Of a stretch of DNA of 64,000 nt, positions 15,296 through 64,000 are shown piece by piece (the stretch's first letter is position 1; every line of letters starts with the position of its first letter). Source of the DNA: Octopus bimaculoides (Eukaryota); contig NC_068987.1 of assembly GCF_001194135.2 (NCBI RefSeq), positions 48,737,124 through 48,801,123 of the forward strand, in the 5' to 3' direction. The position numbers were made by a program, and so were the translations under genes. The notes under the pieces are model-generated. The model saw only the letters and a program-made list of their open reading frames with translations, made no database searches and was not told the origin of the DNA.

Positions 15296-15471
15296 TGGAT
15301 TCATTATGGTGTTTCTGCAATCCTTGTGCAGGAACAGTCGTCAACAATTCTTGCCTTGCAAAAGAAGGAAGCAAATGTTTCACTGCAATAGAAGAAAAAA
15401 TGGAAAACAATATAGCAGTTGATGTTTGGAGTTTTGGATGTTTGCCTCCACATGAAAGCACTGTCCTTCAG
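15296..15471 (+). CDS. BMPR1: BMP type I receptor, extracellular exon 1 (activin-receptor/three-finger fold, first 6 Cys)
   Basis: Acceptor catttcctttttcAG (ends 15295), donor GTgagt at 15472; 176 nt, phase 1 to 0. Encodes DSLWCFCNPCAGTVVNNSCLAKEGSKCFTAIEEKMENNIAVDVWSFGCLPPHESTVLQ. Confidence 0.92.
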
Positions 15472-26539: not shown

Positions 26540-26660
26540 TGTAAAGGGGATTTGGTTCCTCATGTTACCCCTCAGACTGTAGCATGTTGTGATGGGGAAG
26601 ATTACTGCAATAGAGATTTGAAGCCCACATTCATAGAACGGAGTACAACTCCAATTCCTG
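26540..26660 (+). CDS. BMPR1: BMP type I receptor, extracellular exon 2 (Cys knot CCx5CN)
   Basis: ttcAG acceptor, GTaagt donor; 121 nt, phase 0 to 1. Encodes CKGDLVPHVTPQTVACCDGEDYCNRDLKPTFIERSTTPIP and completes the 10-Cys ectodomain in frame with the previous exon. Confidence 0.95.
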
Positions 26661-28417: not shown

Positions 28418-28526
28418 GTCCTCAAACTGATACCAACTTTAACAATACCTGCAAAATTGTTGTTGCAGTTTCACTATTATTTTGTGTAATATTGTTAATT
28501 ATAGCAATGCACTGGGGTCATCAAAG
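28418..28526 (+). CDS. BMPR1: BMP type I receptor, transmembrane exon
   Basis: tttttAG acceptor, GTaagt donor; 109 nt, phase 1 to 2. Encodes (G)PQTDTNFNNTCKIVVAVSLLFCVILLIIAMHWGHQ(R) with a hydrophobic span; phase matches the upstream exon. Confidence 0.85.
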
Positions 28527-28879
28527 GTAAGTCATCTGTTGGTTTTGCTTTCCTCCATTTTTTACACCAACCTGCCAGCAACCATCGCTTATTCTATGAT
28601 ACAAACTTCTTCTTTTAAAGTAATCCAGATTAAAACCTTCCATTAAAATTTCCATTTAATTTGTTCCAAACATCAGGTTGATAATAACAAAGTTGTATTA
28701 TTTTTTCATTTTTTTCAAAATTAATTTCATTATTTTCAAAATTAATTAAATTCAGTGTATTTCAACCAAAGTATGGCAACAAAAGCCTTATTTAATAATA
28801 AAAAGATTGTTTTGTTTTTTTTATCCAAGATTTATCTTCAAATTCTTATATTTTCTGGTGGGAGGATGAATTAGGCTGT

Positions 28880-28961
28880 TGTGGCATACAACAGCTTGAT
28901 AGTTATGGTAAAGGTGCTGGTGTGGCATACAACAGCTTGATAGTTATGGTAAAGGTGCTGG
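28880..28961. repeat. Perfect 41-bp tandem duplication
   Basis: TGTGGCATACAACAGCTTGATAGTTATGGTAAAGGTGCTGG twice. Confidence 0.95.
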
Positions 28962-29032
28962 TGTTAAGTTTGAAATTCACTGCTGCACTTGTTTGGTCTC
29001 AAAGCAAACCTGTGCAGTTGATACAAGTTGGA

Positions 29033-30234
29033 GACTAGTTATTGCACTACCACCCTACTATAAATGTATATTTAACATATCACTGCTTGACCAATCTTTA
29101 GTTCATGGCTACAACCAAACTCAGTCACACATTCTTTGTGTCCATATGCACCCCTATTGATACAAGTTGGAGATATGAAAATAGTTTGTTGGAAGATATA
29201 TACAAAAAAATATGTATTTGCATATAGAGATACTTGATGAATGCATGGTCATAATCACTTGATAATGTTAGCTCCTCTTCTTTTGCCTCAGATTGTTATT
29301 ATAGTACAAGTATTTGCTGTGTCATTTAGGTTAGGCATTTAATTTATTTAACTTAGGCTATATGGGAAAAGGATGCTTTTAGTGTTGGGAGGTGGAATGA
29401 TCTTGCTGTCGCCTGAAATGCCACAAGGCACAGTGAGAACTGAATGAATGAATATATGGGAAAATAGCTTTGGTGGAACCCATGTCATATGTTTCAAAAC
29501 AATTTAGAAATGCCTTTTTATGGGGTTTTGCAAAGAACTAGAAGTATTTTTTGTATGAAGGTGTTTCACTTCTGGATGAAATTATTGCAGATTATTACAT
29601 CATATAGTATTGTAAGCTTGTTATTCTATGTATACTTTATGTCCAGCTAAGTGACTATAACTCACCAGAAGTTAGGAACAATTGTGTGAAGTCTGCTTTA
29701 CTGATGAGGTCAAGTGCTTGTATAATGGTTCAAGCACCTGGGGGAAAAGACAAACCTCATAAACTGAGGTTTGTAAACTGAGTTTGTAAGCAGCTTTTGA
29801 GTCTCAGCTTGAGCTTACTAATAATATCCTTAGTATTCTTTGAGTTCAACTTTACAATATTTTTTATTCATGTTTAGCAGTGTTTTCAAAGGGGGTGGTG
29901 GAAAATTTTATATGAGTCCTGGGGACCAAGAGGACAGTAATGAAGAGCAAGTGGTGCCCCCACTATATATAGTTTAAGTCTTTGTCTCCTATTTAAATAT
30001 CAACCTTTAAAATATTTAAATGTAATATCATGATGAACTGTTTGCCAGGCAGAATCACAACTATAACAAATATAAATTGGAATATGAAGATAGATTTCAC
30101 TCGATAACTACAGGGGTGCATATGGACACAAAGAATGTGTGACTGAGTTTGGTTGTAGCCATGAACTAAAGATTGGTCAAGCAGTGATATGTTAAATATA
30201 CATTTATAGTAGGGTGGTAGTGCAATAACTAGTC
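29033..30234. repeat. Perfect 123-bp inverted repeat pair (29033-29155 and 30112-30234)
   Basis: Reverse-complement identity by manual comparison; the left copy is flanked by a 17-bp direct repeat TTGATACAAGTTGGAGA (29018-29034 and 29157-29173). Confidence 0.92.
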
Positions 30235-30394
30235 ACCAGCATTAAACTAGTATCCAGAACCAAATTACTATGGCCTGATATTATGTGCATGCACATCACA
30301 ATGGGGGGCATGCATTGACTTGTAGCAAGGGGACATTGAAAAGTTGTTACTAAAAAAAAAGGGGGCAATAGGTGAAAACATTTGGGAAAATGGG
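29878..30394. mobile_element. Possible hAT/Charlie-like MITE
   Basis: Starts CAGTGTTTTCAAA and ends ...TTTGGGAAAATGG, a degenerate CAGTGTTTCCCAAA-type TIR pair; no clear TSD. Confidence 0.35.
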
Positions 30395-30521
30395 CTTCCT
30401 GGATATGAAATAATTACATGATAAATTCGGTAGCCTCTCAAGTATAAACTTGATGTTTTGTAAAGATTTATGTAATCCTCTTAATACCAATCTGTTATAA
30501 ATCAGTCATACTAAATGTTCA

Positions 30522-31524
30522 TCTATACTATATATAAAACAGAGATGTGTGTGTAATCGCTTTTCACGTGAAATCGACTTCACCAAATGCTTCCATACTT
30601 GTGATGCGTGAATAATTTGACCTCGGATAAATCTTAGGCTCTTCATTTGATTTTTTTAATTAAAAATAAATAATATTGCTTTATATTTAAGATTCACTTC
30701 TTTAAAAAGGTTCCTCAATGTCAACTTCCGGTATTGACGTAACAACGGCAAAAAGCTTTCNNNNNNNNNNNNNNNNNNNNNNNNNNNNNNNNNNNNNNNN
30801 NNNNNNNNNNNNNNNNNNNNNNNNNNNNNNNNNNNNNNNNNNNNNNNNNNNNNNNNNNNNNNNNNNNNNNNNNNNNNNNNNNNNNNNNNNNNNNNNNNNN
30901 NNNNNNNNNNNNNNNNNNNNNNNNNNNNNNNNNNNNNNNNNNNNNNNNNNNNNNNNNNNNNNNNNNNNNNNNNNNNNNNNNNNNNNNNNNNNNNNNNNNN
31001 NNNNNNNNNNNNNNNNNNNNNNNNNNNNNNNNNNNNNNNNNNNNNNNNNNNNNNNNNNNNNNNNNNNNNNNNNNNNNNNNNNNNNNNNNNNNNNNNNNNN
31101 NNNNNNNNNNNNNNNNNNNNNNNNNNNNNNNNNNNNNNNNNNNNNNNNNNNNNNNNNNNNNNNNNNNNNNNNNNNNNNNNNNNNNNNNNNNNNNNNNNNN
31201 NNNNNNNNNNNNNNNNNNNNNNNNNNNNNNNNNNNNNNNNNNNNNNNNNNNNNNNNNNNNNAATTACTCTTGTGAGGATATTCACGTAAATCATTTTTTT
31301 CATTTAATCCCCATTTTAATTTTCGTAAAAGTTTCCAAGTACCAATGAGGCTTTTTGGCACATCTTCAATTTTCCCCATTCATGAGAGGCGCCCAGCCAT
31401 CATTCATCTGAGAGTCCATCTACAGAATGTCCTCTCAAATTTCTATACAGCATATTTTGCCTTTTTTTCTTCAAGTATATAAGCAACAATTTCATTCCCG
31501 AGCAACGCCGGGTGCCTCTGCTAG
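30522..31524 (+). mobile_element. Non-autonomous Helitron (N gap 30761-31260)
   Basis: A|TCTATACTATATATAAAAC 5' end; 3' hairpin CCCG-agcaacgc-CGGG (31497-31512) followed by CTAG|T; inserted at an A|T site with no TSD. Confidence 0.85.
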
Positions 31525-32352
31525 TATTTAAATAAAAATCTCAGTCAAAACATTACATTAATGATAGTGCAAGACTCCAATGCTAAACAGCAGTTCTCTG
31601 TATCCTAATTTATAAAATAAGATATTTTGTTACTTAAACCCCACCTAAACCTTGATGTTTAATATTATTTGAAACCCTTTTTACTCAGACTACTCATAAT
31701 TGAGTAGAAATTGAGTCATAAATGGTTCAAGCCATTCAGATATTCTTTATGTAAATATGATTTTATTAGGAAACAGTTAAAACAAGTGTGAACTATTTGA
31801 TAAAGACATTTATAATGTAAAGAAAAAAGAAAAAAAAAAAACTCTGGTAATTTCAACACTTGGTTTAACTATCTTCATGTTATAAAATTTGACTATCATT
31901 TTTTCACAAGCACACGTATTGCACTGTTGTAAACACTATTTAGGGAACTGTTATCAACAGGATGTCAATGAGATTATTCTGGAAAGAATACATTAACATC
32001 TTTTGAAATGGTAATAGAGCTAGTTCTTAGGTTCACGACAGGATATTTTAAGGCTGCCTCTGATGTTGACAGCTGCACTTCTTTTGTTTAAAGGTTGCAC
32101 AATAGCAGCAGCTGTTCACTCCAATTTTACCTTTTTGTTGTAAACTGCTAGAATTTCATGTTGAGCAGTGAAAATGCTGCTTCGTTACTGTGATACTTCA
32201 ATTTCTTTACCATTGCAGTTGGAAGACACTATTCAGTGTGTATATATTTTAGTTCAACATACCCATGTCTTTTATCTGACGCTTAATAGAGTATAAGCCT
32301 GAAAAATGTATCTTGTTCTTTTATTTGTTCAGCCACTTGCTTGTCTAATTTA

Positions 32353-32512
32353 CCGTATCTTAACATGTATAAGGAACCCCCTAATCTTTTGGGCTTAAAA
32401 TTTGGAAAAAAGGTTTTGTAAGGGATTATAATACTATCCATGTATAAGAAACTCCCATTTTTTTAACCTAATTTTTGACAAAAATGGGTTCCTTATATAC
32501 GTTAAAATATGG
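32353..32512. mobile_element. Tc1/mariner-pogo-type MITE (160 bp)
   Basis: TA TSDs; imperfect TIRs of about 27 bp, CCGTATCTTAACATGTATAAGGAACCC and GGGTTCCTTATATACGTTAAAATATGG. Confidence 0.85.
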
Positions 32513-33057
32513 TAATTATCATTGATAACAAAAGTTATAAATAATGCAACAGATTTTCAATTTTAAATATTTTTTTATTGATGGATTGAAGGTATTTATG
32601 CATAGCTTTGGGACACTATGTATGAAATAATTTTCATTGGGAAGTGAATGTCATGTGGTGTGTGTGTAGCAAGAAGCTTGCTTGCCAACCACATGTTTCG
32701 GGGTTCATTCCCACTGTATGGCACTTTGGGCAAGTGTCTTTTACTGTAGCCTTGCGCCAACCAAAGCCTTGTGAGTGGGTTTAGTAGGCGGAAACTGAAA
32801 GAAATTCGTCTGTGCGTGTCCCACTAGTGCTGGTGTGTTTACATTGCCGTAACTTATCAGTTTGGCAAAAGAAACCAGTAGAATAAGTACTCTGGCTAAT
32901 ACGTTTGACTAAAAATTCTTCAAGGTGGTGCCCTAACATAACTGCAGTCATAAAATTACTCTGGAAGATGGGAATTAATAAGTGGTGTCTAGAAAAAATA
33001 GCATAGGAGCTTTTTGTGAGCACACACAAAAACGTTTCCCATAAACGAACTTAAAGG

Positions 33058-33088
<31 letters not shown>

Positions 33089-34201
33089 NNNNNNNNNNNN
33101 NNNNNNNNNNNNNNNNNNNNNNNNNNNNNNNNNNNNNNNNNNNNNNNNNNNNNNNNNNNNNNNNNNNNNNNNNNNNNNNNNNNNNNNNNNNNNNNNNNNN
33201 NNNNNNNNNNNNNNNNNNNNNNNNNNNNNNNNNNNNNNNNNNNNNNNNNNNNNNNNNNNNNNNNNNNNNNNNNNNNNNNNNNNNNNNNNNNNNNNNNNNN
33301 NNNNNNNNNNNNNNNNNNNNNNNNNNNNNNNNNNNNNNNNNNNNNNNNNNNNNNNNNNNNNNNNNNNNNNNNNNNNNNNNNNNNNNNNNACACACACACA
33401 CACACACACATGCACATACATACCTTCTTAGATATATAGGTGGGTGTCTCACTAGACAGTAGTGTTCGTCTCCACTGTACATGTGTCATTGTTGGCATCA
33501 TTGTCATTTTAACATCCACTTTTCCATGCTTGCGGGTATCAGATTGAATTTATTGAGGCAAATTTTCTGCTGCCTGTTTTCAAGTAAGGTAATATTTCCC
33601 CATGGCCAGACATATTTTCATGAAAGTTTGAAAATGAAGGACACTGTTTGTACAATGGTGATGTTTGTTTTCAACTGTGGCATAGTGACAAGATGACGAT
33701 ACAAGGAGACATTACATATGTGCACACATAGATGGGTGTCTTTGAGTTTCTGTCTACCAAATCCACAAACAAAGCTTTGGTTGGCGCTGTACTACAATAG
33801 AAGACACTCAACCAAGCTACCAGCAGTGGGTTTAAACCCAAAATTATGTGATTGGAAAGCAAACTCCTAAACCTCTCAACCAGGCATTACATAATATATG
33901 TACATATTTATGTTATGTTAAGATTTTTTTTGTGTCTGAGGAGGATTTTTATGCCAATATGAAACATGCACTGGTTTTATTTCACATCTTTTATTATTAT
34001 TAAGAAATTGATTAATCAAACTACTTAATTGGTTAAATGGTTAACTAATAATAATAAAAGAAGTGAAATAGAACCAGTTCCTTATTAGCATTGTGACCCT
34101 CCCAAGATGTAACAAAATCTATTTCAACACAATTACTCATCATGAATTTTGCTAACCAAATGCAAAAACATAATGATACTTTTATCATGATTTTAATTTA
34201 A

Positions 34202-34406
34202 CCCTTTAGTGTTCATGCTATTCTGTCAAATGCAATGCTTATTTTTTTCACATTGTTTAGAATTAATCAGCCATTATCTTGTAACTGAGATTTTAATGAT
34301 GTGACTATTTTTAAAATGATATTGTTAAGTAGGCATTAGAGGCTAGATCTGATGAATTTAAGCCTAAAATGGGTAGAATATTTTGGCTGGTTTAAATGTT
34401 AAAGGC
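34202..34406. mobile_element. piggyBac-type MITE
   Basis: TTAA-CCCTTTAG...TAAAGGC-TTAA; an opposite-orientation relative lies at 43545-43764. Confidence 0.7.
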
Positions 34407-35504
34407 TTAAATACAAACACTTTGGTTTCAGGTGTGTTAGTATTAAGTGTTAAGCAGAAATCAGTTGTCCTATCTAGGGTACTGTAAAGCAACCAATCCT
34501 ACATATTACTGCCTCAACAATCTTCTCTGCAAGATATTTTTTGTTTTCTTTTTCTTTTAAATTTCTATTATTAATTTTGTTATTATAGCCTGTTTTATCT
34601 GTCCTCCTCCTACTTAAAAAAAACTTGAGTGCATTTTCCTTGTCATCTTGAACTTCAATGACTCTACTTCAGAGTCATTATCTTATTTGTGGTTATTAAG
34701 TGTGAAAACTGAGATAGTCCAACTTATCACCAACAAACACATTAACTTAAAAGAAGAAAAAAAAAATGCTGGGGCTAAACAACTCTATTTACTAAAATAG
34801 TAGCTGCTGTATGTAGCTACTCCAGCCACTTAGGCCTTGCAAACTGCACACCAAACTATCCACAAAGTCCTCCTCACTCTCTTCCTCCATCTCACATGCC
34901 AGCAACACTTCAGATCACTACAATTACTACGAGTAAATTTTCCATCTCATCCACATGAAATAGATTAATTATAATAATAACAGCAACAACAACCCTGCTT
35001 ATTACATCAAATTAACTGCAATTGTTGATTGTTTACATTAGGCCCAAATACTGAGCTAGGCTGTCAACTATTAACTACTAATACATCCCTCAGGAATTGA
35101 GACTGTTGTGTACTGACTGGGTTAGTCCTGCCTGACTCCTCTGAGCCATTATAGAAGCTTTTGATCATATGTAAACATAAGATATAGGCACAGTCGTGGT
35201 TGTTTAGTTCAGGAATTTGTTTCCCAACCACTTGGTTACAGGTTCAGTCTCACTATGTGGTACCATAAGCAAGTGTTTTCCCTATAATTCTGGGCCAACC
35301 AAAGCCTTGTGACTAGATTTGCTAGATGGAAAACCAAAGAAGATTGTCGTGTGTGTGCGCGTGTTAGTGTCTCCCCGTCTTGACATGGTGTGACATCATA
35401 TAAGCAGTGTCTTTCTGTGAAAACATGTCTGGCCATGGAGAAATATTACCTTACTTGTAAACATGTGAGGGCTGGTGATGGGAAGGGCATTAAGCCATAG
35501 AAAA

Positions 35505-36050
35505 TCATCATCATCGTTTACCGTCCGCTTTCCATGCTAGCATGGGTTGGACGATTTGACTGAGGTCTGGTGAAACTGGATGGCTACACCAGGCTCCAAT
35601 CTGATTTGGCAGAGTTTCTACAGCTGGATACCCTTCCTAATGCCAACCACTCAGGGAGTGTAGTGGGTGCTTTTATGTGTCACCCACACGAAGGCCAGTC
35701 AGGCGGTACTGGCAACGGCCACGCTCAAATTGGTGCATTTTATGTGCCACCTGCACAAGAGCCAGTCCAGGGGCACTGGCAACGATCTCTCTCGAAAATC
35801 CCACGAAGGCCACCAGGCGGCACTGGCAACGGTCACGCTTAAACTGGTGCATTTCATGTGTCACCCGTACAAGAGCCAGTCCAGGGGCACTGGCAATGAT
35901 CTCGCTCGAAAATCCTACNNNNNNNNNNGGGCACTGGCAATGATCTCGCTCGAAAATCCTACGACGGCCCCGCACAAGAGCCAGTCCATGGGCACTGGCA
36001 ACGGCCTCAATATATTCCATTCAGACCATGCAAGCAAGGAAAAAAAAAGC
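35505..36050 (-). mobile_element. RTE 3' UTR copy with an expanded internal minisatellite
   Basis: Same family as 3533-3970. Two units of about 115 bp (about 35687-35801 and 35802-35917) plus partial units, built on the core GGCACTGGCAA(C/T)G. Confidence 0.8.
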
Positions 36051-36289
36051 AGACATTAAAACAATGATAACAAATGGCTATTGATTGGTTTGAGTAAATA
36101 TCTTATAACACTTATTTAGCAACAATTAGATTATTAGGAGACTAATGGATTGTGATCCTCCAAAATCTGCACTTTATAACAATTGATAATAGTTGCTAAA
36201 TTATTTCATAATTTCAAGTTCTGTTATTAGTTCCTCTACATAAAATTCTTACTAGAAATATTAATTTGTAAAGTTAGCGAGATCAATTT

Positions 36290-36572
36290 TCGAGCGAGAT
36301 CGTTGCCAGTGCCCCTGGGCTGGCTCTTATGCAGGTGGCACATAAAATACACCATTTTGAGCATGGCCGTTGCCAGTACCGCCTGACTGCCCTTCGTGCG
36401 GGTGACACGTAAAAGCACCCATTACACTCTCTGAGTGGTTGGCATTAGGAAGGGCATCCAGCTGTAGAAACTGCCAAATCAGATTGGAGTCTGGTGTTGC
36501 CATCCGGTTTCACCAGTCCTCAATCAAATCGTCCAACCCATGCTAGCATGGAAAGCGGATGTTAAACAATGA
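36290..36572 (+). mobile_element. RTE 3' UTR copy, inverted relative to 35505-36050
   Basis: Close reverse-complement match to about 35515-35795; ends gctagcatggaaagcggatgttaaacaatgat. Confidence 0.8.
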
Positions 36573-37159
36573 TTTAGCTCTTTTGATACCAACCCATCTG
36601 GAACTCCTGATTCTGTGATACAAACTTGCTATTTTAAAAGAATCTAAATGAAAACTTTCNNNNNNNNNNNNNNNNNNNNNNNNNNNNNNNNNNNNNNNNN
36701 NNNNNNNNNNNNNNNNNNNNNNNNNNNNNNNNNNNNNNNNNNNNNNNNNNNNNNNNNNNNNNNNNNNNNNNNNNNNNNNNNNNNNNNNNNNNNNNNNNNN
36801 NNNNNNNNNNNNNNNNNNNNNNNNNNNNNNNNNNNNNNNNNNNNNNNNNNNNNNNNNNNNNNNNNNNNNNNNNNNNNNNNNNNNNNNNNNNNNNNNNNNN
36901 NNNNNNNNNNNNNNNNNNNNNNNNNNNNNNNNNNNNNNNNNNNNNNNNNNNNNNNNNNNNNNNNNNNNNNNNNNNNNNNNNNNNNNNNNNNNNNNNNNNN
37001 NNNNNNNNNNNNNNNNNNNNNNNNNNNNNNNNNNNNNNNNNNNNNNNNNNNNNNNNNTTCATTTACAACATACTTTTGAGAAATATAAATGTCAATATCT
37101 ACCATTTCTTCTTCCTAGAACATCAAAGGAAATATGGTAATAGTAATAATAATAACAAC

Positions 37160-37204
<45 letters not shown>

Positions 37205-38290
37205 CCTTTCTATTCTAGGCACAAGACCTGAGATTTTGGGGGAGGGGGTTAGTTGATTGCATTGAACCCAGTGTTTGATTGGTACTTATTTCATCAACCC
37301 TAAAAAGATGAAAGGCAAAGTTGACCTTGATGGAATTTGAACTTAATGTAAAACTAGAAAAAATGCCGCTAAATATTTTGTCTGGCACAGTAACAATTCT
37401 GCTAGCTCACTGCCTTCAGTGATAATAATGATTTCAAATTTTGACATAAAGCCAGCAATTTGGGGGAAGTGGGTAAGTTGATTACATTGACCTCAGTTCT
37501 TAACTGGTACTCAAAAGGAAGAAAGATCAGCCTTGGCAGAATATGAACTCAGAACAAAGATGAGTGGAATGCTATTAAGCATTATGTCAGGCATGCTAAA
37601 GACTTTGTCAGTTTGCTACCTTAATAATAATAATATTAATAATAATAATTCTTTCTACTATAGGGACAAATTTTGAGGGGGAGGTCTAGTTGATTATATC
37701 AACACTAGTGCTTTACTGGTATTTATTTCACTGAGCCTGAAAGGAAGAAAGGCAAAGTTGATCTTGGCAGAATTTGAACTCAGAACGTAAAGATGAACAA
37801 AATGCCATTAAGCATTATTATTAATAGTAATAATAATAATAATAAAATAATAATAATTCTCTCAGATTATGACACAAGGTGAGCAATTTTAGGGAAGGGG
37901 TTTATTTGATTCTATCAGCCCCAGTAGTTGACTGGTACTTTGTTATCTATCCCAAAAAGACAGAAGGCAAAGTTGATGTTAGCATAATTTGAACTCAAAA
38001 CATAAAGATCCAGAAGTAATACTGTTTAACATTTTGTCCAATGTGCCAATGATTCTGCCAGCTTGCCACCTTAATAAAAATGATAATTGTTCCTAACTGA
38101 GGCAAAAGACTAGCAGTTTTGAGGGGTTGGGGGTTAACTGATACCATCTACCTTCATTATCTTAGGGTGGTACTTCATTTTTAACGATATCCAGGGGAAT
38201 GAAAAAACAAAGTCGACTTTGGTGGAATTTGAACTCACAGCATAAACTGCTGGAAAAAATACTGCCTGGTATTTTCTCTGATACTTCAAT
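37205..38290 (-). repeat. Head-to-tail cluster of 5 family-B SINEs separated by (TAA)n
   Basis: Five reverse-orientation copies at about 37205, 37430, 37650, 37860 and 38090. Confidence 0.75.
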
Positions 38291-39389
38291 GCAATTGTAT
38301 CTAATTTACAAGACCAACTATTTTGACGGGAAGCAGTTAGTTGATATCATCCTGAATATTCTGGTAAAATCGACATATGCTGATCTCCTTCACAAAAACA
38401 TAGACCCGCATATGACTACACATTTTACTGATCAATAGTTATTTATTGAATTATTTTATTTACAGATTTTGAGCCCTTTTATGTACAACACTTAAAACTA
38501 AACTTTGTTGAAGTTGACCCACCCCCAAAAAAAAAAACAGATGGTGTGCTTCAATATTTACACTACCTGAATATTCATAGAACCTAACATAAATTAATAA
38601 AAACATGCATATTTTAGCTCCTATACTTACTTATGGGTACTAGTGTGTGGCTGTGTGATTAAGAAGCTTACTTCCCAACCACATGGTTTTTGGGTTTAGT
38701 TGCACTATGCAGTACCTTGGGCAAGTTCTTGTACAATAGCACTGGGGTGACCAAAGCCTATTAAGTGAACTTAGTAAACAGAAAACTGAAAGAAGCTTCC
38801 GTGTGTGTGTGTTTGTGCACACCCTTGTGTTGACATTATATGGTAATTGTAAACAAGCCTCATCATCATACAAGTGATGTTGTTTGTTGCTAGTCTTCAA
38901 TGAAAAAGATATCTGGCCATGGGGAAATATTTCCTCATTTAGAAAGGAGTGTTGGTGACAGGAAAGGCATCAACAAATTCCATCCAGCCCATGCAAGTAT
39001 GGAAAAGGAGATATTAAACAATGGTAATGACTTTCCACAGGAATAGAAACATTCAAACATATAGAAATTAAATGCACATAACTCATGGATATATATATAT
39101 ATATATATCATCATAAATATATCATCATTATATTTATGATGATAAATGGTCTTACCGATAAAGGTTTATTTCATACTGAACTACTTGGCAAAATTGTTAA
39201 TTGTTAATTCTATTATTAATTGACGATTCCCTGCCCTCATTTCTTGTATATANNNNNNNNNNNNNNNNNNNNNNNNNNNNNNNNNNNNNNNNNNNNNNNN
39301 NNNNNNNNNNNNNNNNNNNNNNNNNNNNNNNNNNNAAACATATAGAAATTAAATGCACATAACTCATGGATATATATATATATATATAT

Positions 39390-40460
39390 CAGGCTGAGTA
39401 AAAAGTAAGCAACGTTTTGAAACATGAAATTCATCACAATATATTTCAACAATGTGGAAATTTTATTCATCAAAGTAAGTACCATTACAATCAACACATT
39501 TTTGCCAACATGTAACAAGTTTGTTTTATTCCAGTAACATAAAAATCTGGAGTTCTGGAGCTGATGAACTCTTTGAATGCACTTTCAGCATCGGTTGATT
39601 TTTGAACTCCTTCTCTCACTGGAAACCATCAAGGTGCTTGAAAAAGTGGTGCTCGGTAGTAAAAAGATCTTGGGAATAAGCTGGGTGGGGAAGAACTTTG
39701 TAGCCAAGTTCCCTCAACTTCTGCATGTCGTCAAGCATTCAATGGCCCTCTTCTGTTGACCAGTCTGGAACGGAGGAGTAGCAGTTTTTCGTTCATTTTA
39801 GCAATTTCATGGCAATATGTTTGTGCAGTAATGGTTTTTCCGAGTTTTAAGAAGTTATAGTGGATGAGTCCAGCAGTACACCACCAAACAGTCACCATAA
39901 CCGTCTTTCTGAAGAGCTCAGATTTGGGGATTTCGGTGCTACATTTTGGTCCAACCACTGCGAAGAATGTTTTTTATTATTGTACAGAATCCACTTTTCA
40001 TCACAAGTTACAATACGGTTGAGAAAGGGATTGGTCTGGTTACAGAGAAGAAGCGACGAGCAAATTTCATATCTGCACATTTTCTGATTTTCATTCAAAT
40101 CGTGTGGTACTCATTTGTTGAGCTTTTTTGATTTTATGATTGCATGCAAATAGTTGCAGGCAGTTTTCTGGCTAACTTGAAGTTCTTTTTCCCAGTTCTC
40201 AAGTGGTTTTACGTGGATCTTTCTCAACGATGATCTTTAATTGACCGTCATCTATGACAGATGGTTGTCCACTACGCTCACGATCTTCAAGGTTCAGGTC
40301 TCCACTGCAAAATCATTTAAACCATTTTTGATCTGACCACTCACTGGTCCTTTCCTCACCAAATGTTTTCTTGATATCGCAAGCAGTTTCAGCTACTTTA
40401 TCTCCTTTTTGAAGTTGAATAGCAAAATTTCTCAAATGTAACTTTGGCAGCTCCATTTCA
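39390..40460 (-). mobile_element. Mariner (DD34D) transposon, near full-length transposase pseudogene, 5' TIR lost
   Basis: ATG at 40456 and TAA at 39463-39465. Encodes MELPKLHLR...FCSGDLNLEDRERSGQPS, IVTCDEKWILYNN, VMVTVWWCTAGLIHYNFL, HHFFKHLD and CVDCNGTYFDE, with frameshifts. TA-CAGGCTGAGTAAAAAGTAAG terminus at 39390. Confidence 0.92.
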
Positions 40461-40464
40461 GAAC

Positions 40465-41922
40465 TAGAGAAGTTTCAGGTGTGGAAGCAAGGATTAGAAT
40501 CAAAGGGCCTTAGAGTCAACCTAACTAAAACCAAAGTCCTAACAAGTAGGAAGATAGACAAACTACAGGTAGATGGCCCTGCTCGATCTGTAGAAAAGGC
40601 GTAGGTAGAAACTCTATAAGATGTACCCAGTGTAAGCTATGGACACATAAGTGGTGCAGCAATATCAAAGGAAGGATAACTAGCAAAACAGTTTTTGTAT
40701 GTGGTAGATGCTCAGGTGCAATAAACACTGAAAATGTGCAGAGAACAACTTCCGCCACATTCCAGGGAGAAAAGCTAGAAGTAGTTGATAGCTTCTGTTA
40801 CCTAGGTGACCAAGTTAGTAGTGGGGGTGGGTGCTCTGAAAGTGTAGCTGCTAGAATAAGAATAGCCTGGGCAAAGTTCAGAGAGCTCTTACCTCTGCTG
40901 GTGACAAAGGGCCTCTTGCTCAGAGTAAAAGGCAGACTGTATGATGCATGTGTACAAACAGCCATGCTACATGGCAGTAAAACATGGGCTGTGACTGCTG
41001 AGGACATGCTTAAGCTTGCAAGGAATGAAGCCAGTATGCTCCGATGGATGTGTAATGTCAGTGTGCATACCCGACAGAGTGTAAGTACCTTGAGAGAAAA
41101 GTTAGACCTAAGAAGCATCAGTTGTGATGTGCAAGAGAGACGATTGCGCTTGTATGGTCATGTGGTGAGAATGGATAGCTGTGTGAAAAAGTGCTACACC
41201 ATAATGGTTGAGGGAACCTGTGGAAGACGCAGACCCAGGAAGACCTGGGATGAGGTGGTGAAGCATGACCTTCGAACATTAGGCCTCACCGAGGCAATGA
41301 CTAGTGACCGAGACCTTTGGAAATATGCTGTGCATGAGAAGACCCTGCAAGACAAATGAGACAATAACCCGTGGCCTTTACCAGGTGTGTAACCAGCTCA
41401 CTTACGCATACCTTTCCTTTCCTTCTTTGAACACTAAACTCTGCTTGTGAAGACCTGTTGAGACAAGTGAAATCAAAATCAAACCAAATTCGATGACTGG
41501 CACCCGTGCCAGTGGAGCGCTAGCAGCACCATCCAAGCGGGATCATTGCCAGAGCAGCTGTCTGGCTTTTGTGTCGGTGGCATGTAACAAGCACCATTTG
41601 AGCATGATCGTTACCAGCGTCACCTTACTGGCACTTGTGCCGATGGAATGTGAACAAAACATTCGAGCGAGGTCATTGCCAGTTCTGCTGGACTGACTCC
41701 TGTGCAGGTGGCACGTAAAAAACACCATTTGAGCGTGGCTGTTGCCAGTACCGCCTGACTGGCCCTCGTGCTGGTGGCACGTAAAGGCAACCACTACACT
41801 CTCGGAGTGGTTGGCATTAAGAAGGGCAGCTTGGTGCAGCCATCTCATTCGCCAGTCCTCAGTCAAATTGTCCAAACCATGCTAGCATGGAAAGCGGACG
41901 TTAAACGATGATGATGATGATG
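40465..41922 (+). mobile_element. RTE-clade LINE, 5'-truncated: RT C-terminus with a Cys-rich PHD-like insert, 3' UTR and (GAT)n tail
   Basis: WPCSICRKGVGRNSIRCTQCKLWTHKWCS...FVCGRC, then LEVVDSFCYLGD...AWAKFRELLPLL...ERRLRLYGHVVRM...RPRKTWDEVVKHDL (ORF 40736-41359); tail gatgatgatgatgatg at about 41907-41922. Confidence 0.93.
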
Positions 41923-42295
41923 TTTGTAGCAACGGTGAAAAAAATACCAATGTTAATTGATGCATTTAGGCAAGTCTGTGTCTGTATTATCAGACAATTG
42001 CAATAAAATGTTGAAAAAAATTCAAANNNNNNNNNNNNNNNNNNNNNNNNNNNNNNNNNNNNNNNNNNNNNNNNNNNNNNNNNNNNNNNNNNNNNNNNNN
42101 NNNNNNNNNNNNNNNNNNNNNNNNNNNNNNNNNNNNNNNNNNNNNNNNNNNNNNNNNNNNNNNNNNNNNNNNNNNNNNNNNNNNNNNNNNNNNNNNNNNN
42201 NNNNNNNNNNNNNNNNNNNNNNNNNNNNNNNNNNNNNNNNNNNNNNNNNNNNNNNNNNNNNNNNNNNNNNNNNNNNNNNNNNNNNNNNNNNNNNN

Positions 42296-42336
<41 letters not shown>

Positions 42337-43544
42337 GAAACACAGATTTGTATAATTACATACCTTACACCAAATGCATACATATCTGCACATAAGCATA
42401 TGCAACCTTGCTCCCTTCCACGTAGTCATCAGATGCCTCAAGTTTTATGTGCGCACACACAAAAGTGCCTCACAATTTACACATGGCGAACACACATTAC
42501 TCATCTCATGCTTCATACCATATGCGTGCATACATACACATCACTAACACCATGGACCCGCATACCAAGTAACAAACATCGCATATCTTTTCACTGAATA
42601 CACACCTTATGTATCACATACCATTTTTAGGCATACTTCACACGGAACCATTTAACATGTTCCTCGTATATCATTAACTATTAATCTGGGAAATAATTGA
42701 AAGGCCCTTAACCATGAACAATGTTCATCCTCCCTCAATCAAATATATAAAAACCAGAAACCCCTGCTTGATGAAGGTCAACTTGTGGCTGCAATAACTA
42801 AATAAAAATCTTTGTATAGGTGCAGGTATGGCTGTGTGGTAAGAAGTTTGCTTCCCAACTGCATTGTTCCAGGTTGTCCCATTGCATGACACATTGGGCA
42901 AGTGTCTTCTGCTGTAGACCAGGGTTGACCAAATTCTTGTGAGTGGATTTAGTGGATGGAAACTGAAAGAAGCTTGTCGTGTTTGTCCCTTTGCCACTGC
43001 CTGACAACTGTTGTTTGTTTCTTTGTCTCTGTAACTTAGTGCTTCAGCATAAGAGACTGATAGAGTAAGTACTAGGCTTGAAAAGGAAAATACTGGGGTC
43101 AATTTGTTTGATTAAAAACCCTTCAAAGCAACACATCATAACTGAAAGAAGTAAAAGATAAAAAATACTGCACCTCCATATATTGTACTCACACACACAC
43201 TCACGTATGCTCTCTCACATACATGCACACACATTCACTCTTACCTACTTCCTCTTGGCTGCAGCAGTTGAGTATCATCTCTGCAGTTCTATTCTGAAAG
43301 GTCACCCAGGATTTAATTGGCTGTCAATATAAGTGAGTGCATAATAATGACTGACCAAGACAAAGCAAATTTTTGCCTGTCAAATTGACTATAGCCGTTT
43401 CTACTACATCCATAAACAATTACATCTCTGACATCTATGAACAATTACATCTCTGACTAGTGAAATTAATTAATTACATCATATTAACTGACTATACACG
43501 CACGCACTTTATACTGATATGTACAAACATGATCATATGTTTAA

Positions 43545-43764
43545 CTCTTTAGCATTTAAACCGGCAATATCTGGCCAAAATATACTACTTGTTTAATGTT
43601 CAAACTGGCCAAATTTGGTCTCTTACACCTATCCTACAATGTCATACTAAAAGTAAACAATCACATCATTGAAATCTCAAAACTACAAGACAGTGCATGA
43701 TTAATTCAAGAGAATGTTAATAAATTAGCATTACATTTGACAGAATAATCTGAATGCTAAAGGG
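43545..43764. mobile_element. piggyBac-type MITE
   Basis: TTAA-CTCTTTAGCATT...AATGCTAAAGGG-TTAC. A second TTAA-flanked MITE family appears near 1495-1625/1803-2140, 14620-14823, 15030-15170 and 28560-28790. Confidence 0.7.
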
Positions 43765-44684
43765 TTACATAGTTTGCTTCCCGACTATGTGGTTTTGGGT
43801 TCAGTACCACTGCATCTTGGGCAAGTGTTTTCTGGCACTAGCTTGACCAAAACCTTGTGAAGTTTCTGCGGAGTGAAACTGAAAGAAGTCTACCCTGTGT
43901 GGTGTTTGTGTCACTTTGTCTTGACTGTGTGATAGTTGTAAAGGAGCATCACCATCATACAAGCAGTGGCCTTCAGGTCTAATCTTCGTGGTTGTGTCAG
44001 GCCATGGGGGAGTATTACTTTGCTCAGAAACATGCTTTTGTTGTAAGGAAATCGCACAAAATTTTAAACTTGAAATCATTCAAACCCTAAAAATTGAAAT
44101 AATGATCTATTTTCAATTTCTTTTTTAATATTTTTATTGTTTTTGAGTATAAATTTAAATTCTCATTTAAGAAAAAATATTATAAATGTGAATTGGTAAA
44201 ATATTTAGAATCTCAGGTAAAATGCCCTACAGTATCCCACTATGTTCTTTTACATTTTATGTTCAAAACCCACTGATGCAGGCTTTGACTTTTGCCCTTT
44301 TCTAGGGTTGACAATATACAATAAATACCAGTCATGTACCAGGGTCAGTTTGGAATTTCTTTAAAGCATCCTAGATGTGAATAGAACTATAATAGAACTC
44401 TCTGCCCAACAATTTTAATTTATAGAAAAAATATATTAAAAAAATCCACATGGAACTGAGAAAAGGAAAGATGAAAACAAAGGAAGTTTTCTAATGTCCA
44501 TTAAAATTCTTTTTCTTTTGAAGTTTATAATTAAAAATCTTTGCTTTCCAATTTTAATTTATAAAAGAAAATATTAAATTAGAATTTTACATTGAAAAAA
44601 ATAAAATTGAGAAAAATAAAAATAATAGAATTGAAATTTCTCATCATTGATAATTATCATAAAAGCTTTTCTTTTTCATTGTAG

Positions 44685-44877
44685 GTTCAGCGCACAATAG
44701 CTAAGCAAATATATTTGATTAAGAGTATAGGAAAAGGTCGGTATGGTGAGGTGTGGAAAGGCAAGTGGAGAGGGGAAAATGTTGCAGTGAAGATATTTTT
44801 TACCACAGAAGAAGATAGTTGGTTCAGAGAAACTGAACTTTACCAAACAGTGCTGCTTAGACATGATAATATATTAG
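44685..44877 (+). CDS. BMPR1: BMP type I receptor, kinase exon 1 (P-loop, VAVK, alphaC)
   Basis: gtAG acceptor, GTaagg donor; 193 nt, phase 0 to 1. Encodes [64 protein letters not shown]; GKGRYGEV and FFTTEExSWFRETE are ALK3/6/Tkv signatures. Confidence 0.97.
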
Positions 44878-48522: not shown

Positions 48523-48942
48523 NNNNNNNNNNNNNNNNNNNNNNNNNNNNNNNNNNNNNNNNNNNNNNNNNNNNNNNNNNNNNNNNNNNNNNNNNNNNNN
48601 NNNNNNNNNNNNNNNNNNNNNATATATATGTATACAGCTGTTTGTAAAGACATATTATGGATAAATTATAGTTTGTTGTGGTAAATACCAAGATTACTCT
48701 ATAACTGATGTTTTGGTAGCATACAAGATGGAGTTAGAAACATTTTTCAGAAGCCTGAAAAAGAGCAATAGATCTTCTATCACCTTATAAGAAGTAGGTT
48801 TTTGTTATTGACACATTGTGATACATTACTTACTTCATTGTGTGTATTATATGTTCAAGTCTTGCTGCAAACATTTCACTATATATATATTTTTTTTTAT
48901 TTTAATTTTTTTTTTTTTGGCCTTTGTTGAATCTGCAGTAGG

Positions 48943-51609: not shown

Positions 51610-51789
51610 GATTTCTAGCTGCTGATATCAAAGGTACACAGCTATATCTCATAACAGACTACCATGATCATGGGTCACTATATGATTTCCTTAGGGCAAA
51701 CACATTGAATGCTGTTGATATGATGCGCTTAGCTCACTCAACAGTAGCAGGTCTTGCATTCCTTCATGCAGAAATATATGGAGCAAAAG
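51610..51789 (+). CDS. BMPR1: BMP type I receptor, kinase exon 2 (shortened L45 loop, hinge)
   Basis: ttttAG acceptor, GTcagt donor; 180 nt, phase 1 to 1. Encodes (G)[59 protein letters not shown]. Confidence 0.96.
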
Positions 51790-53150
51790 GTCAGTCCTTG
51801 TTCATTAATTTTCCTTTTTTTCTTTGATGATTCTTATTTTTTTTGCATGTACATGAGCTGTAAAGTTAAAATGTTTTAATTACAAATATGCTCTGGTTAT
51901 TAATATACACCCATAAGCAAAACACATTATTCTACTAACCTCAGTCTGTGTCTCTCTCACACACACACAGATGGACATCTATTTTCATTTAAATATCTAA
52001 TATTGATGTGATTAGACTATGTAAAAGTAGAATAACATGTGCAAATGCACTTCTGTTTAAAATGGCATTTTATAATCTATCAAAAAGTAAACTCCTTATG
52101 AAAATTCATAAAGCAGTGTATATTATTTATTAGTTAAAACATTTTGCTATTTCAGTCAATGTAAGAAAAACTAACTCTATGGACAGTCTTAGAATTCATG
52201 AAATTTAATGTTTTTATCTAACCTACCTGTCATTGCATAATGTTACCTCCTTCTCTGCTTATACCCCCCACTCACTTGAAGGGGTCTTGTCTTATGCGTT
52301 ATCTGATGACCTCACTAGTACTGGTATTATGAAAGAAGCACCCAGTACACTTTGTAAAGTGGTTGACATTAGGAAAGGAATCTTGCTGTTAAAAAAAAAA
52401 AACTAAGAAGAAATTGGAGCTTGAAACTGTCCTCTGCCTTGTCAGATTCTGTCAAACCTTCCAACCCATGCCAACATGGAAGACAGATGGCATTAATTGA
52501 TGATAATGATGATGATGCCAGGAAAGGCACAACAGCTATAAAATAAGCTGATGCAGTATTTTTGTTAAAATATGTGCATTAAAAGATCCATATGGTCCAT
52601 ATAACAAGTGAATGTAATTTATACATCTACCAAGTTAAAGAAAGGAAAAAGTAAATTGCTGTACTTTGAAATGCATATAGCAGTGAGCTCCTGCTGTTTA
52701 TACTCAGATTACTCCTGACTGAGCAGGCCTAAACTCAAACATGTTACTGTTGTGACCATCTTATATTTTGCATATCTGAAACTACTTTGTCCAGTGTATA
52801 ATTTTTTAAAGATGCCTGTGGACAGAGAGGTTTGGCTATTATTTCTAACAGCTTGGTTAGTGAAATTTTGTTTCCAATTGAGCATATCTATTGTTAAGAG
52901 GGCAGAATTTTTGTTTTAAAATGTACGTTCACAATCCAAGGGAACGTCTAATGGAGTTAAAAATTTTGTTTTAGTTCAAATGTGAGTGCATGTCTGTCTG
53001 GCTCAGATGGAAGAGACAGTAATCTTTTGATGATAGTATAGTTAGATTGTTATGATACTAATTTATTAATTATTTTTCTTTATTACTCTTCTTCTGTTCC
53101 TTGCATTGCTGTTGATATTGATAAAAACATTTACCTCTATTCTCTTCAAG

Positions 53151-53256
53151 GTAAACCTGCATTAGCTCATCGAGACATAAAAAGTAAGAATATTTTGGTG
53201 AAGAAAAACCTAACATGTTGTATAGCAGATCTTGGACTTTGTGTCAAATATATTAG
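53151..53256 (+). CDS. BMPR1: BMP type I receptor, kinase exon 3 (HRD catalytic loop, DLG)
   Basis: ttcaAG acceptor, GTacag donor; 106 nt, phase 1 to 2. Encodes (G)[34 protein letters not shown]. Below the 60-aa threshold, so absent from the ORF track. Confidence 0.96.
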
Positions 53257-53989
53257 GTACAGTAATTATTTCATTCCTTACACATATGCGCGTGCACACA
53301 TACATGCACACACACACAAACACACACACCTGTATTTCTTTTCCCCTGTTACTTGCATTTCCTAAGTTTTAGTGTGTCATGTTATTTTTGAACTTTCATG
53401 TTGCATCCTCATCATTGCCATGGTCACTGTATTATGTTCACTACCCATGCTGGCATGGACTGGATGGATTATTTTTTTCCTCTCTTAGATGAGTCAGAGG
53501 ACTAGGTCTCATTCCTAAGTTTAATTTTTGGCTCAGTTTCTATGGCTGGACATCAAGGCATCATCATTAGAAAGGTTGATGTATTTTCAACAAGATCAAA
53601 GGTTCCTTGCAGCCTTACATGTAACTGCACTGGGTGCCTTTTATTGTGGCACCAGTACTAAAGAAGAACAAAGTTGAGAGAGTTCTGAGTGATTACTGTT
53701 GAGCTGAGAGTGAAGAAATGTTTGAGATAAAACATAACATCTGCAATAAAATAGATGCTAACATCGTTGATGTAGTAGGAAAGTTTCAAAGTTATACCTG
53801 TGGTGATGAAAATAATCATTTTGCCAGTTTCACATGACTTCTGAAATATTTTATCTGAATTGTGAAATATCTAAGCTGCAAATCTTGAATATTCACAGGA
53901 ATTGTAGTAATTCATATTCTTTACATTAAAGTTTGACTAGCCAGATATTAAACAAATTTTTTTTTACCTGGAATGTATGTTGAATTTTT

Positions 53990-58534: not shown

Positions 58535-59397
58535 NNNNNNNNNNNNNNNNNNNNNNNNNNNNNNNNNNNNNNNNNNNNNNNNNNNNNNNNNNNNNNNNNN
58601 NNNNNNNNNNNNNNNNNNNNNNNNNNNNNNNNNNNNNNNNNNNNNNNNNNNNNNNNNNNNNNNNNNNNNNNNNNNNNNNNNNNNNNNNNNNNNNNNNNNN
58701 NNNNNNNNNNNNNNNNNNNNNNNNNNNNNNNNNNNNNNNNNNNNNNNNNNNNNNNNNNNNNNNNNNNNNNNNNNNNNNNNNNNNNNNNNNNNNNNNNNNN
58801 NNNNNNNNNNNNNNNNNNNNNNNNNNNNNNNNNNNNNNNNNNNNNNNNNNNNNNNNNNNNNNNNNNNNNNNNNNNNNNNNNNNNNNNNNNNNNNNNNNNN
58901 NNNNNNNNNNNNNNNNNNNNNNNNNNNNNNNNNNNNNNNNNNNNNNNNNNNNNNNNNNNNNNNNNNNNNNNNNNNNNNNNNNNNNNNNNNNNNNNNNNNN
59001 NNNNNNNNNNNNNNNNNNNNNNNNNNNNNNNNNNNNNNNNNNNNNNNNNNNNNNNNNNNNNNNNNNNNNNNNNNNNNNNNNNNNNNNNNNNNNNNNNNNN
59101 NNNNNNNNNNNNNNNNNNNNNNNNNNNNNNNNNNNNNNNNNNNNNNNNNNNNNNNNNNNNNNNNNNNNNNNNNNNNNNNNNNNNNNNNNNNNNNNNNNNN
59201 NNNNNNNNNNNNNNNNNNNNNNNNNNNNNNNNNNNNNNNNNNNNNNNNNNNNNNNNNNNNNNNNNNNNNNNNNNNNNNNNNNNNNNNNNNNNNNNNNNNN
59301 NNNNNNNNNNNNNNNNNNNNNNNNNNNNNNNNNNNNNNNNNNNNNNNNNNNNNNNNNNNNNNNNNNNNNNNNNNNNNNNNNNNNNNNNNNNNNNNNN

Positions 59398-59749: not shown

Positions 59750-59925
59750 TGAAACTAATGAAGTGGATATTGCACCTAATTCTCGACAGGGCACCAAATT
59801 GTATATGAGCCCAGAAATATTGGATGATACTATAAATAGGAAACATTTTGAATCATTCAAACAGGCAGATGTGTATGCTCTTGGTTTAGTTCTATGGGAA
59901 ATTGCACGTCGGTGTGTTCATAAAG
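59750..59925 (+). CDS. BMPR1: BMP type I receptor, kinase exon 4 (activation segment, subdomain IX)
   Basis: tgcAG acceptor, GTactg donor; 176 nt, phase 2 to 1. Encodes (S)[58 protein letters not shown]. The remaining 3' exons are not seen before 64000. Confidence 0.96.
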
Positions 59926-63383: not shown

Positions 63384-63664
63384 TATATCTAGCGAGAGAG
63401 AGGAGGAAGAGTGGACATAGAAAATTTGTTTCAACAAATTCCACTTGAGTTATGCAAGCATGCAAAAGTAGACATTAGATGATGATAATGAACCTACAAC
63501 ACTTATAATGCAAATCATAACTTACTTGCATGCTTTGTCTTCAGAATGATCACTCAGAAGAGCTCTCTCATCCCAGTCATTTGCTGCTTCAATCCATATA
63601 TCTCTGTCATTAGTTTTCACTTACACCTTATACACGTTTACTTCCTCTACATAAAATATATTTC

Positions 63665-63695
<31 letters not shown>

Positions 63696-63713
63696 GGATA
63701 TATATATATATAT

Positions 63714-64000
63714 GACTGGTGTAGCAGCACCATAGTAAACTGCTACAAAGGTAAAGGTGACGCTTTAGACACTAATAATTACAGAGGCATCAAGCTGTTA
63801 GATCAGGTTATGAAAGTTACGGAGAGGGTCATAGCCCAACTAATTAGGGAGCAAATCAATTTAGATGAGATACAGTTTGGGTTTGTGCCAGGTAAAAGCA
63901 CCACTGATGCCATATTTCTAGTGAGACAGCTGCAGGAGAAATATCTAGCCAAGGATAAACCTCTGTACCTGGCCTTCGTTGACATGGAGAAAGCCTTTGA
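63714..64000 (+). mobile_element. RTE LINE reverse transcriptase N-terminal part (runs off the window)
   Basis: Uninterrupted 95 codons: DWCSSTIVNCYKGKGDALDTNNYRGIKLLDQVMKVTERV...QFGFVPGKSTTDAIFLVRQLQEKYL...AFVDMEKAF. Confidence 0.92.

Follow-up and report, generated by a model that had tools for sequence, protein, structure and literature searches.

The BMP type I receptor (BMPR1) of Octopus bimaculoides possesses a five-residue L45 loop, I-K-G-T-Q, in place of the nine-residue signature IKGTGSWTQ, and this is the sole feature of the family that it fails to display. In the textbook account, L45 is the part of a TGF-beta-family type I receptor that decides its R-Smad partner. Octopods and a cuttlefish share the short loop, which on present sequences appears to be cephalopod-wide as far as sampled, and the kinase that carries it is otherwise complete. 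The coleoid short-loop protein is probably a working canonical BMP2/4 type I receptor that still phosphorylates Smad1/5.

The window, a 64-kb stretch of O. bimaculoides DNA (~34% GC) with 15 N runs, long introns and retrotransposon debris, is traversed by the BMPR1 gene on the + strand. Seven exons were mapped (Table 1), with exon 1 and the last two exons falling outside the window. All seven have AG acceptors and GT donors, and their joined frame contains no stop; the encoded protein is identical to RefSeq XP_014776832.2 (P0121, 'bone morphogenetic protein receptor type-1B [Octopus bimaculoides]'), with the identity of the two ectodomain exons and the transmembrane exon established by tblastn. 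The four kinase exons keep VAVK, the alphaC Glu (FRETE), HRD and DLG in translation, and the orthologue P0122 has intact Activin_recp (PF01064), TGF_beta_GS and Pkinase domains. The introns also contain retrotransposon remnants, namely an 807-nt ORF at 40550-41356 (+) with a weak PHD-finger match just under the Pfam cut-off, and an ORF at 63492-63998 (+) with a reverse-transcriptase (RVT_1) match that continues past the window end. Microsatellites of (CA)n type at 51950-51970 and 53288-53330, in the introns flanking the kinase exons, are typical of the octopus genome and have no evident link to the deletion.

Table 1. Exons and motifs of the BMPR1 gene located in the window.
Feature	Position in window	Strand	Basis
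Ectodomain exon A, 176 nt (VDSLWCFCNPC...HESTVLQ)	15296..15471	+	tblastn with P0121/P0122; AG/GT; Activin_recp in orthologue
Ectodomain exon B, 121 nt (CKGDLVPH...TTPIPG)	26540..26660	+	tblastn; AG/GT splice sites
Transmembrane exon, 109 nt (PQTDTNFNNTCKIVVAVSLLFCVILLIIAMHWGHQ)	28418..28526	+	100% tblastn match to P0121/P0122; splice sites
Kinase exon, 193 nt (VQRTIAKQ...GKGRYGEVW...VAVK...FRETELYQ...HDNIL): glycine-rich loop, catalytic Lys, alphaC Glu	44685..44877	+	translation; phmmer
Kinase exon, 180 nt (...AEIYGAK): beta4, shortened L45 loop, beta5, hinge, alphaD-alphaE	51610..51789	+	AG/GT; scallop and Argonauta exons
Five-residue L45 loop, ATC AAA GGT ACA CAG = I-K-G-T-Q (canonical IKGTGSWTQ)	51627..51641	+	sequence; alignments
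Kinase exon, 106 nt: HRD catalytic loop and DLG motif	53151..53256	+	translation; AG/GT boundaries
Kinase exon, 176 nt: activation segment, with octopod R-to-L in GTKRYMAPE (TTG 59799-59801)	59750..59925	+	translation; alignment

GS-coding sequence (SGSGSGLPLL) was found nowhere in the 64-kb window. The interval between the transmembrane exon and the first kinase exon (28527-44684) holds six N runs (30761-31261, 33089-33389, 35919-35928, 36660-37057, 39253-39335 and 42027-42295). Other cephalopods do have a GS box: the proteins of O. vulgaris, O. sinensis, Argonauta and Sepia carry one, and so does an Argonauta genomic exon (L014:54986-55114). In O. bimaculoides an assembly gap between 28.5 and 44.7 kb most likely conceals the GS exon, which in O. 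vulgaris and Argonauta encodes RFCR...SSGSGSGLPLL. The 481-aa RefSeq model XP_014776832.2 has no TGF_beta_GS domain and an aberrant C-terminus, and spurious exons, with matches around 29100-29183 and 44187-44222, fill the GS hole. This GS-less model is an annotation artefact arising from assembly gaps, not biology.

The loop is read in the context ttttag/GA TTT CTA GCT GCT GAT ATC AAA GGT ACA CAG CTA TAT CTC (GAT at 51624-51626), and the N runs nearest to its exon lie at 48523-48621 and 58535-59397. In a phmmer comparison with PDB sequences, the top match, human BMPR1B (PDB 3MDY, E 1e-109), aligns over 216 residues with a 4-residue gap at GT[GSWT]Q as the sole indel, an alignment compatible with the loss of either GSWT or TGSW. 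The kinase exons of BMPR1 from the scallop Mizuhopecten yessoensis (L013) measure 193/192/106/176 nt against 193/180/106/176 nt in octopus, with matching boundaries and phases, and the 192-nt exon reads GGT ACA GGG TCC TGG ACT CAG where the octopus equivalent reads GGT ACA CAG. Given equal exon boundaries and lengths of 180 versus 192 nt, the difference is a 12-nt in-frame deletion within the exon, not a splice-site shift. The first-pass annotation, made from the letters alone, had described a four-residue L45 deletion in a BMP type I receptor with intact catalytic motifs and stop-free exons, and had reckoned the 180- and 106-nt exons together to be 12 nt short of a 298-nt human exon. This description is borne out throughout: the loop codons are real and lie in a clean exon, the motifs are present in the four-exon translation, the single gap against 3MDY spans four residues, and the shortfall is exactly that seen against scallop. 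Two splicing-based accounts of the short loop were rejected. Across all frames, the window contains neither a second copy of the loop exon nor a GSWTQ-like peptide, which rules out an alternative or mutually exclusive exon coding for GSWT there. Use of the internal AAAG/GTAC as a splice donor would need an impossible 8-nt intron, and Sepia mRNAs are contiguous at this point.

The same loop recurs in other cephalopods. O. vulgaris (CAI9726163.1) and O. sinensis (XP_029638660.1) encode an identical 510-aa protein with the five-residue loop; in both of these chromosome-scale assemblies the gene extends over ~107 kb. Argonauta hians (GAB1607274.1) has it too, in a genomic L45 exon of 180 nt with boundaries equal to those of octopus; the Argonauta locus (L014) covers 61.5 kb, is gap-free and contains the full exon set, including the GS exon. 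The cuttlefish Sepia esculenta is represented by a 512-aa ORF (P0123) with the five-residue loop and 88% identity to octopus over the aligned kinase region. Its transcript is uninterrupted and was assembled identically in 27 Logan RNA-seq runs, two of which belong to a Sepia esculenta larval project (PRJNA844162; PMC10141105). Across nine codons at the loop, Octopus (GCT GCT GAT ATC AAA GGT ACA CAG CTA) and Sepia (GCC GCA GAT ATA AAA GGA ACC CAG TTG) have six synonymous differences and an identical peptide. The cephalopods compared are Octopus, Argonauta and Sepia; the 61-aa peptide of the loop exon, used as a protein-database query, matched no exon-sized fragments from further cephalopods or Nautilus. 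Two other transcripts, P0097 (L011, SRR30522647) and P0173 (L012, SRR31116234), encode canonical-loop BMPR1 proteins 76-77% identical to the octopus kinase; they have DYHD-GSL and ANTL motifs in common with cephalopods and group with chiton in a neighbour-joining (NJ) tree without bootstrap. P0097, 77% identical, was considered as a candidate Nautilus sequence; that tree, without bootstrap, places it with chiton and P0173.

Outside cephalopods, loops of this length are rare. The 120 best full-length matches were aligned, taking in bivalves, gastropods, a chiton, annelids, nemerteans, brachiopods, arthropods, hemichordates and vertebrates, and the four residues are absent only from the three cephalopod entries. 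In 116 BMPR1 orthologues from outside the cephalopods the loop is canonical or, in a few beetle sequences, one residue short; the second G and the W of GTGSWTQ are invariant in these 116, and the T is 96% conserved. A short loop is therefore not widespread in molluscan BMPR1, with bivalves, gastropods and the chiton all canonical. Near-universality of the nine-residue loop, which the first-pass annotation had asserted for all type I classes, agrees with a family-wide survey covering every class, in which 132 of 150 sequences have nine residues (148 representatives of 50%-identity clusters, plus the chiton BMPR1 and the O. vulgaris protein). Truncated models aside, loops of five to six residues besides that of the cephalopods occur in this survey only in P0266, a Logan transcript cluster of 10 members with the loop IDGTGQ, and in P0290, a single automated gene model from UniRef for Glossina brevipalpis with the loop LIDIQ; both are just 44-48% identical to the cephalopod receptor. 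A further transcript cluster found apart from the survey, P0023, has the six-residue loop ISGATS. Unlike the cephalopod deletion, none of these three short loops is documented clade-wide. In P0072/P0076, INGTGSRT is followed directly by LITDYH, giving a shortened beta4-beta5 region. Five TGFBR1/Baboon-class models (P0062, P0077, P0086, P0087 and P0106) have junk insertions that start with G and lie exactly between ADNK and DNGTWTQ. These look like retained introns and suggest that an intron lies within the L45 loop in those lineages, unlike in the mollusc BMPR1 genes examined. Literature searches on cephalopod BMP receptors, Smads, pSmad or the L45 loop yielded no description of a shortened loop, and a Pinctada BMPR1B paper that cites an Octopus accession makes no mention of L45 or the loop.

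Named matches at the top of the search are all BMPR1A/B-like. The NJ tree, without bootstrap, unites Octopus, Argonauta and Sepia on a long stem amid the BMPR1 sequences of lophotrochozoans, with human ACVR1 and a TGFBR1 far away. By these comparisons the octopus gene is an orthologue of BMPR1 (ALK3/ALK6, Drosophila Thickveins) and does not belong to the ACVR1 or TGFBR1/ACVR1B class; similarity, tree position and exon structure all agree with the receptor type first proposed for the locus. Among the best 120 of 3767 matches, the only Octopus proteins are this receptor and its congeners. Vertebrate BMPR1B, at ~70% identity, is among these 120, so a canonical-loop octopus paralogue would have ranked as well; the single-copy inference comes from one ranked database search and assumes that a paralogue would be annotated and no longer than 1.75x the query.

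Substitution rates indicate that the cephalopod BMPR1 kinase is under very strong purifying selection. Over 218 kinase codons (Nei-Gojobori), O. bimaculoides and Argonauta differ by three conservative replacements, with dN 0.0069, dS 0.758 and dN/dS ~0.009. Against Sepia, pN is 0.081 and pS 0.848 over the same codons, such that synonymous sites are saturated. The locus does not have the marks of a pseudoreceptor or pseudogene: motifs are intact, dN/dS is 0.009 and spliced mRNA is present in the 27 Sepia RNA-seq assemblies.

The deletion is accompanied by changes elsewhere in the kinase. Octopus, Argonauta and Sepia all have I272L, H320F, T328A, G350L/C and A360C, in columns where the other 116 orthologues are at least 93% invariant (numbering as in P0122, with all five residues encoded by the 51610-51789 and 53151-53256 exons); I272L adjoins the shortened loop. 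These five substitutions may be compensatory for the L45 deletion or may be the trace of a period of altered selection. In octopods only (O. bimaculoides, O. vulgaris/sinensis and Argonauta), the invariant Arg of GTKRYMAPE is replaced by Leu (R382L, window 59790-59819). This Arg, in the activation segment and P+1 region, is kept in the 116 other BMPR1 orthologues and in Sepia, and the replacement is common to Octopus and Argonauta and hence not a sequence error. Three further changes at invariant sites are confined to Sepia: R224K and G226A, both within the glycine-rich loop, and G379S. The AlphaFold2 prediction for the O. vulgaris protein has a mean pLDDT of 79 and fits the ALK5, ALK2 and BMPR1B crystal structures with target-normalised TM scores of 0.85-0.91. 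It places beta4 at 270-274 and beta5 at 279-284 with D-I-K-G between them, in a region (residues 275-279) where pLDDT is below 50 and local geometry is unreliable.

Most likely, a 12-bp in-frame deletion in the conserved 192-nt exon converted IKGTGSWTQ to IKGTQ, leaving the beta4-beta5 hairpin (L45) without four residues, and was fixed before the divergence of octopods and cuttlefish. Since then, very strong purifying selection has probably kept the product a receptor kinase with GS-box regulation and catalytic competence. A type II receptor would phosphorylate the BMPR1 GS box, after which BMPR1 would phosphorylate Smad1/5; the Smad would dock on the phosphorylated GS region and on the part of the loop that remains at its base. 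The retained I, G and T would supply BMPR1-class residues, the K being common to the BMPR1 and TGFBR1 classes, and the deleted part would consist mostly of residues that the BMPR1 and TGFBR1/activin-receptor classes have in common (G, W and T). The I, G and T of I-K-G-T are three of the four positions separating BMPR1 from TGFBR1 loops. The substitutions common to Octopus, Argonauta and Sepia may accommodate the deletion.

A canonical BMP2/4 receptor role is favoured because this is the sole BMPR1 found. ALK1/2 activate Smad1/5/8 signalling through an L45 loop of very different sequence (PMC6953019), and the interface thus tolerates change. Where cuttlefish limb buds receive Noggin beads, their dorsoventral identity is respecified and Notum expression shifts (PMC6581508), which indicates that BMP ligand signalling has a transcriptional output in a coleoid, in a result that leaves the receptor and Smad unspecified. 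Together, the sole orthologue and BMP-dependent limb patterning count indirectly against Smad uncoupling. Set against an unchanged canonical role is the invariance of the W and second G in the 116 orthologues, which means that their loss should matter.

A second reading, possible but on balance unlikely, is that the receptor signals and the deletion and substitutions have changed its docking or control. Such remodelling could take the form of co-evolution in the L3 loop or helix 1 of Smad1/5, of altered packing of GS/FKBP12 on beta4/L45 with consequences for threshold or basal activity, or of altered sensitivity to inhibitory Smads. The changes at near-invariant sites common to the three cephalopods, together with R382L in octopods and R224K, G226A and G379S in Sepia, speak for it, and so does the long stem of the cephalopod group in the NJ tree without bootstrap. 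L45 is one of the insertions defining this kinase family, and its base packs on the inhibitory GS helix; in ALK2, the GS helix hydrogen-bonds beta4 residues at the L45 base, and disease mutations destabilize the GS/FKBP12/L45 packing (PMC3481300). However, the base residues D275 and I276, which match the GS-contacting positions, are kept in the cephalopod receptor.

The first-pass annotation had proposed a kinase-competent receptor that is Smad-uncoupled or re-specified, and an uncoupled receptor is doubtful. It would signal through non-canonical routes (p38/TAK1) or act as a ligand sink, leaving Smad1/5 to a receptor of the ACVR1/Saxophone type. Point mutants of the ALK5 L45 loop reportedly keep kinase activity and lose Smad activation, and the cephalopod kinase is intact and constrained, as the model requires. 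L45 together with the Smad L3 loop is held to set R-Smad choice, and is regarded as the main receptor-side determinant of this recognition (PMC6953019). Several lines of evidence oppose uncoupling: no other BMPR1-class gene was found in Octopus among the best 120 of 3767 matches, the class-specific base I-K-G-T is kept, and a pure decoy would not hold its kinase at a dN/dS of 0.009. The Drosophila BMPR1 orthologue is the indispensable Dpp receptor. BMP antagonism in cuttlefish also has patterning and transcriptional phenotypes (PMC6581508). The decoy role that had been floated when the short loop was first noticed is thus contradicted by a complete kinase at this level of constraint.

It is very improbable that the canonical BMPR1 lies at another locus and that this gene is a lineage-specific paralogue or a copy in decay. 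The absent GS box and aberrant C-terminus of P0121 would fit decay, but these defects are products of assembly gaps, and GS boxes and C-termini are complete in O. vulgaris, O. sinensis, Argonauta and Sepia. The suggestion of a lineage-specific paralogue, also made in the first-pass annotation, fares no better against the lack of any further Octopus BMPR1-class protein in the best 120 matches, the dN/dS of 0.009, the conserved exon structure and the presence of the loop in both octopods and a cuttlefish. An assembly error, collapsed read or rare allele, for which the gapped draft with its 15 N runs and absent GS exon might give grounds, is excluded for practical purposes by the five-residue loop in the independent O. 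vulgaris, O. sinensis and Argonauta hians assemblies and the 27 Sepia esculenta RNA-seq assemblies, with synonymous divergence around the loop.

In ancestry and domain architecture the receptor is of the BMPR1/ALK3/6/Tkv type. Human BMPR1B/ALK6 (3MDY), BMPR1A/ALK3 and Thickveins have the same order of Activin_recp ectodomain, transmembrane segment, GS box and Ser/Thr kinase and the same catalytic motifs; they differ in having IKGTGSWTQ, where octopus has IKGTQ and substitutions at near-invariant positions. In laboratory L45 mutants of ALK5 (TGFBR1), too, only the beta4-beta5 loop is altered and the kinase is otherwise intact; they are the functional precedent for the uncoupling proposal. Those mutants, however, are point substitutions in a receptor of the TGF-beta/activin class, whereas the cephalopod change is a natural four-residue deletion in the BMP class, fixed across coleoid lineages. 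ALK1/ALK2 (ACVR1, Saxophone) also depart from IKGTGSWTQ, for example with MTSRNSSTQ, but retain nine residues, and the cephalopod protein is BMPR1-class. BAMBI, the known decoy in TGF-beta/BMP receptor complexes, lacks the kinase domain entirely, in contrast to the complete and constrained kinase of the cephalopod receptor.

It can be proposed, tentatively, that coleoids rewired receptor-Smad recognition in the BMP pathway, with the loss of the L45 tip and the five common substitutions marking changed docking or regulation. Such rewiring could involve a co-evolved Smad1/5 surface, docking through the GS region only, a change in how FKBP12 or I-Smads control the receptor, or a handover of Smad1/5 activation to ACVR1, and would constitute a natural experiment in which the canonical L45 'specificity code' can be dispensed with or replaced. 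A clade including octopods and a cuttlefish has retained the only BMPR1 found in it without four loop residues, an invariant Trp among them. The cephalopod BMPR1, the functional meaning of whose short loop is putative, may offer a clean test, set up by nature, of whether Smad1/5 activation requires the L45 tip. If the short-loop receptor still activates Smad1/5, the loop tip would be dispensable and the docking model would need refining; if it does not, cephalopod BMP signalling would be wired unlike that of other bilaterians, with a bearing on the evolution of the body plan and nervous system.
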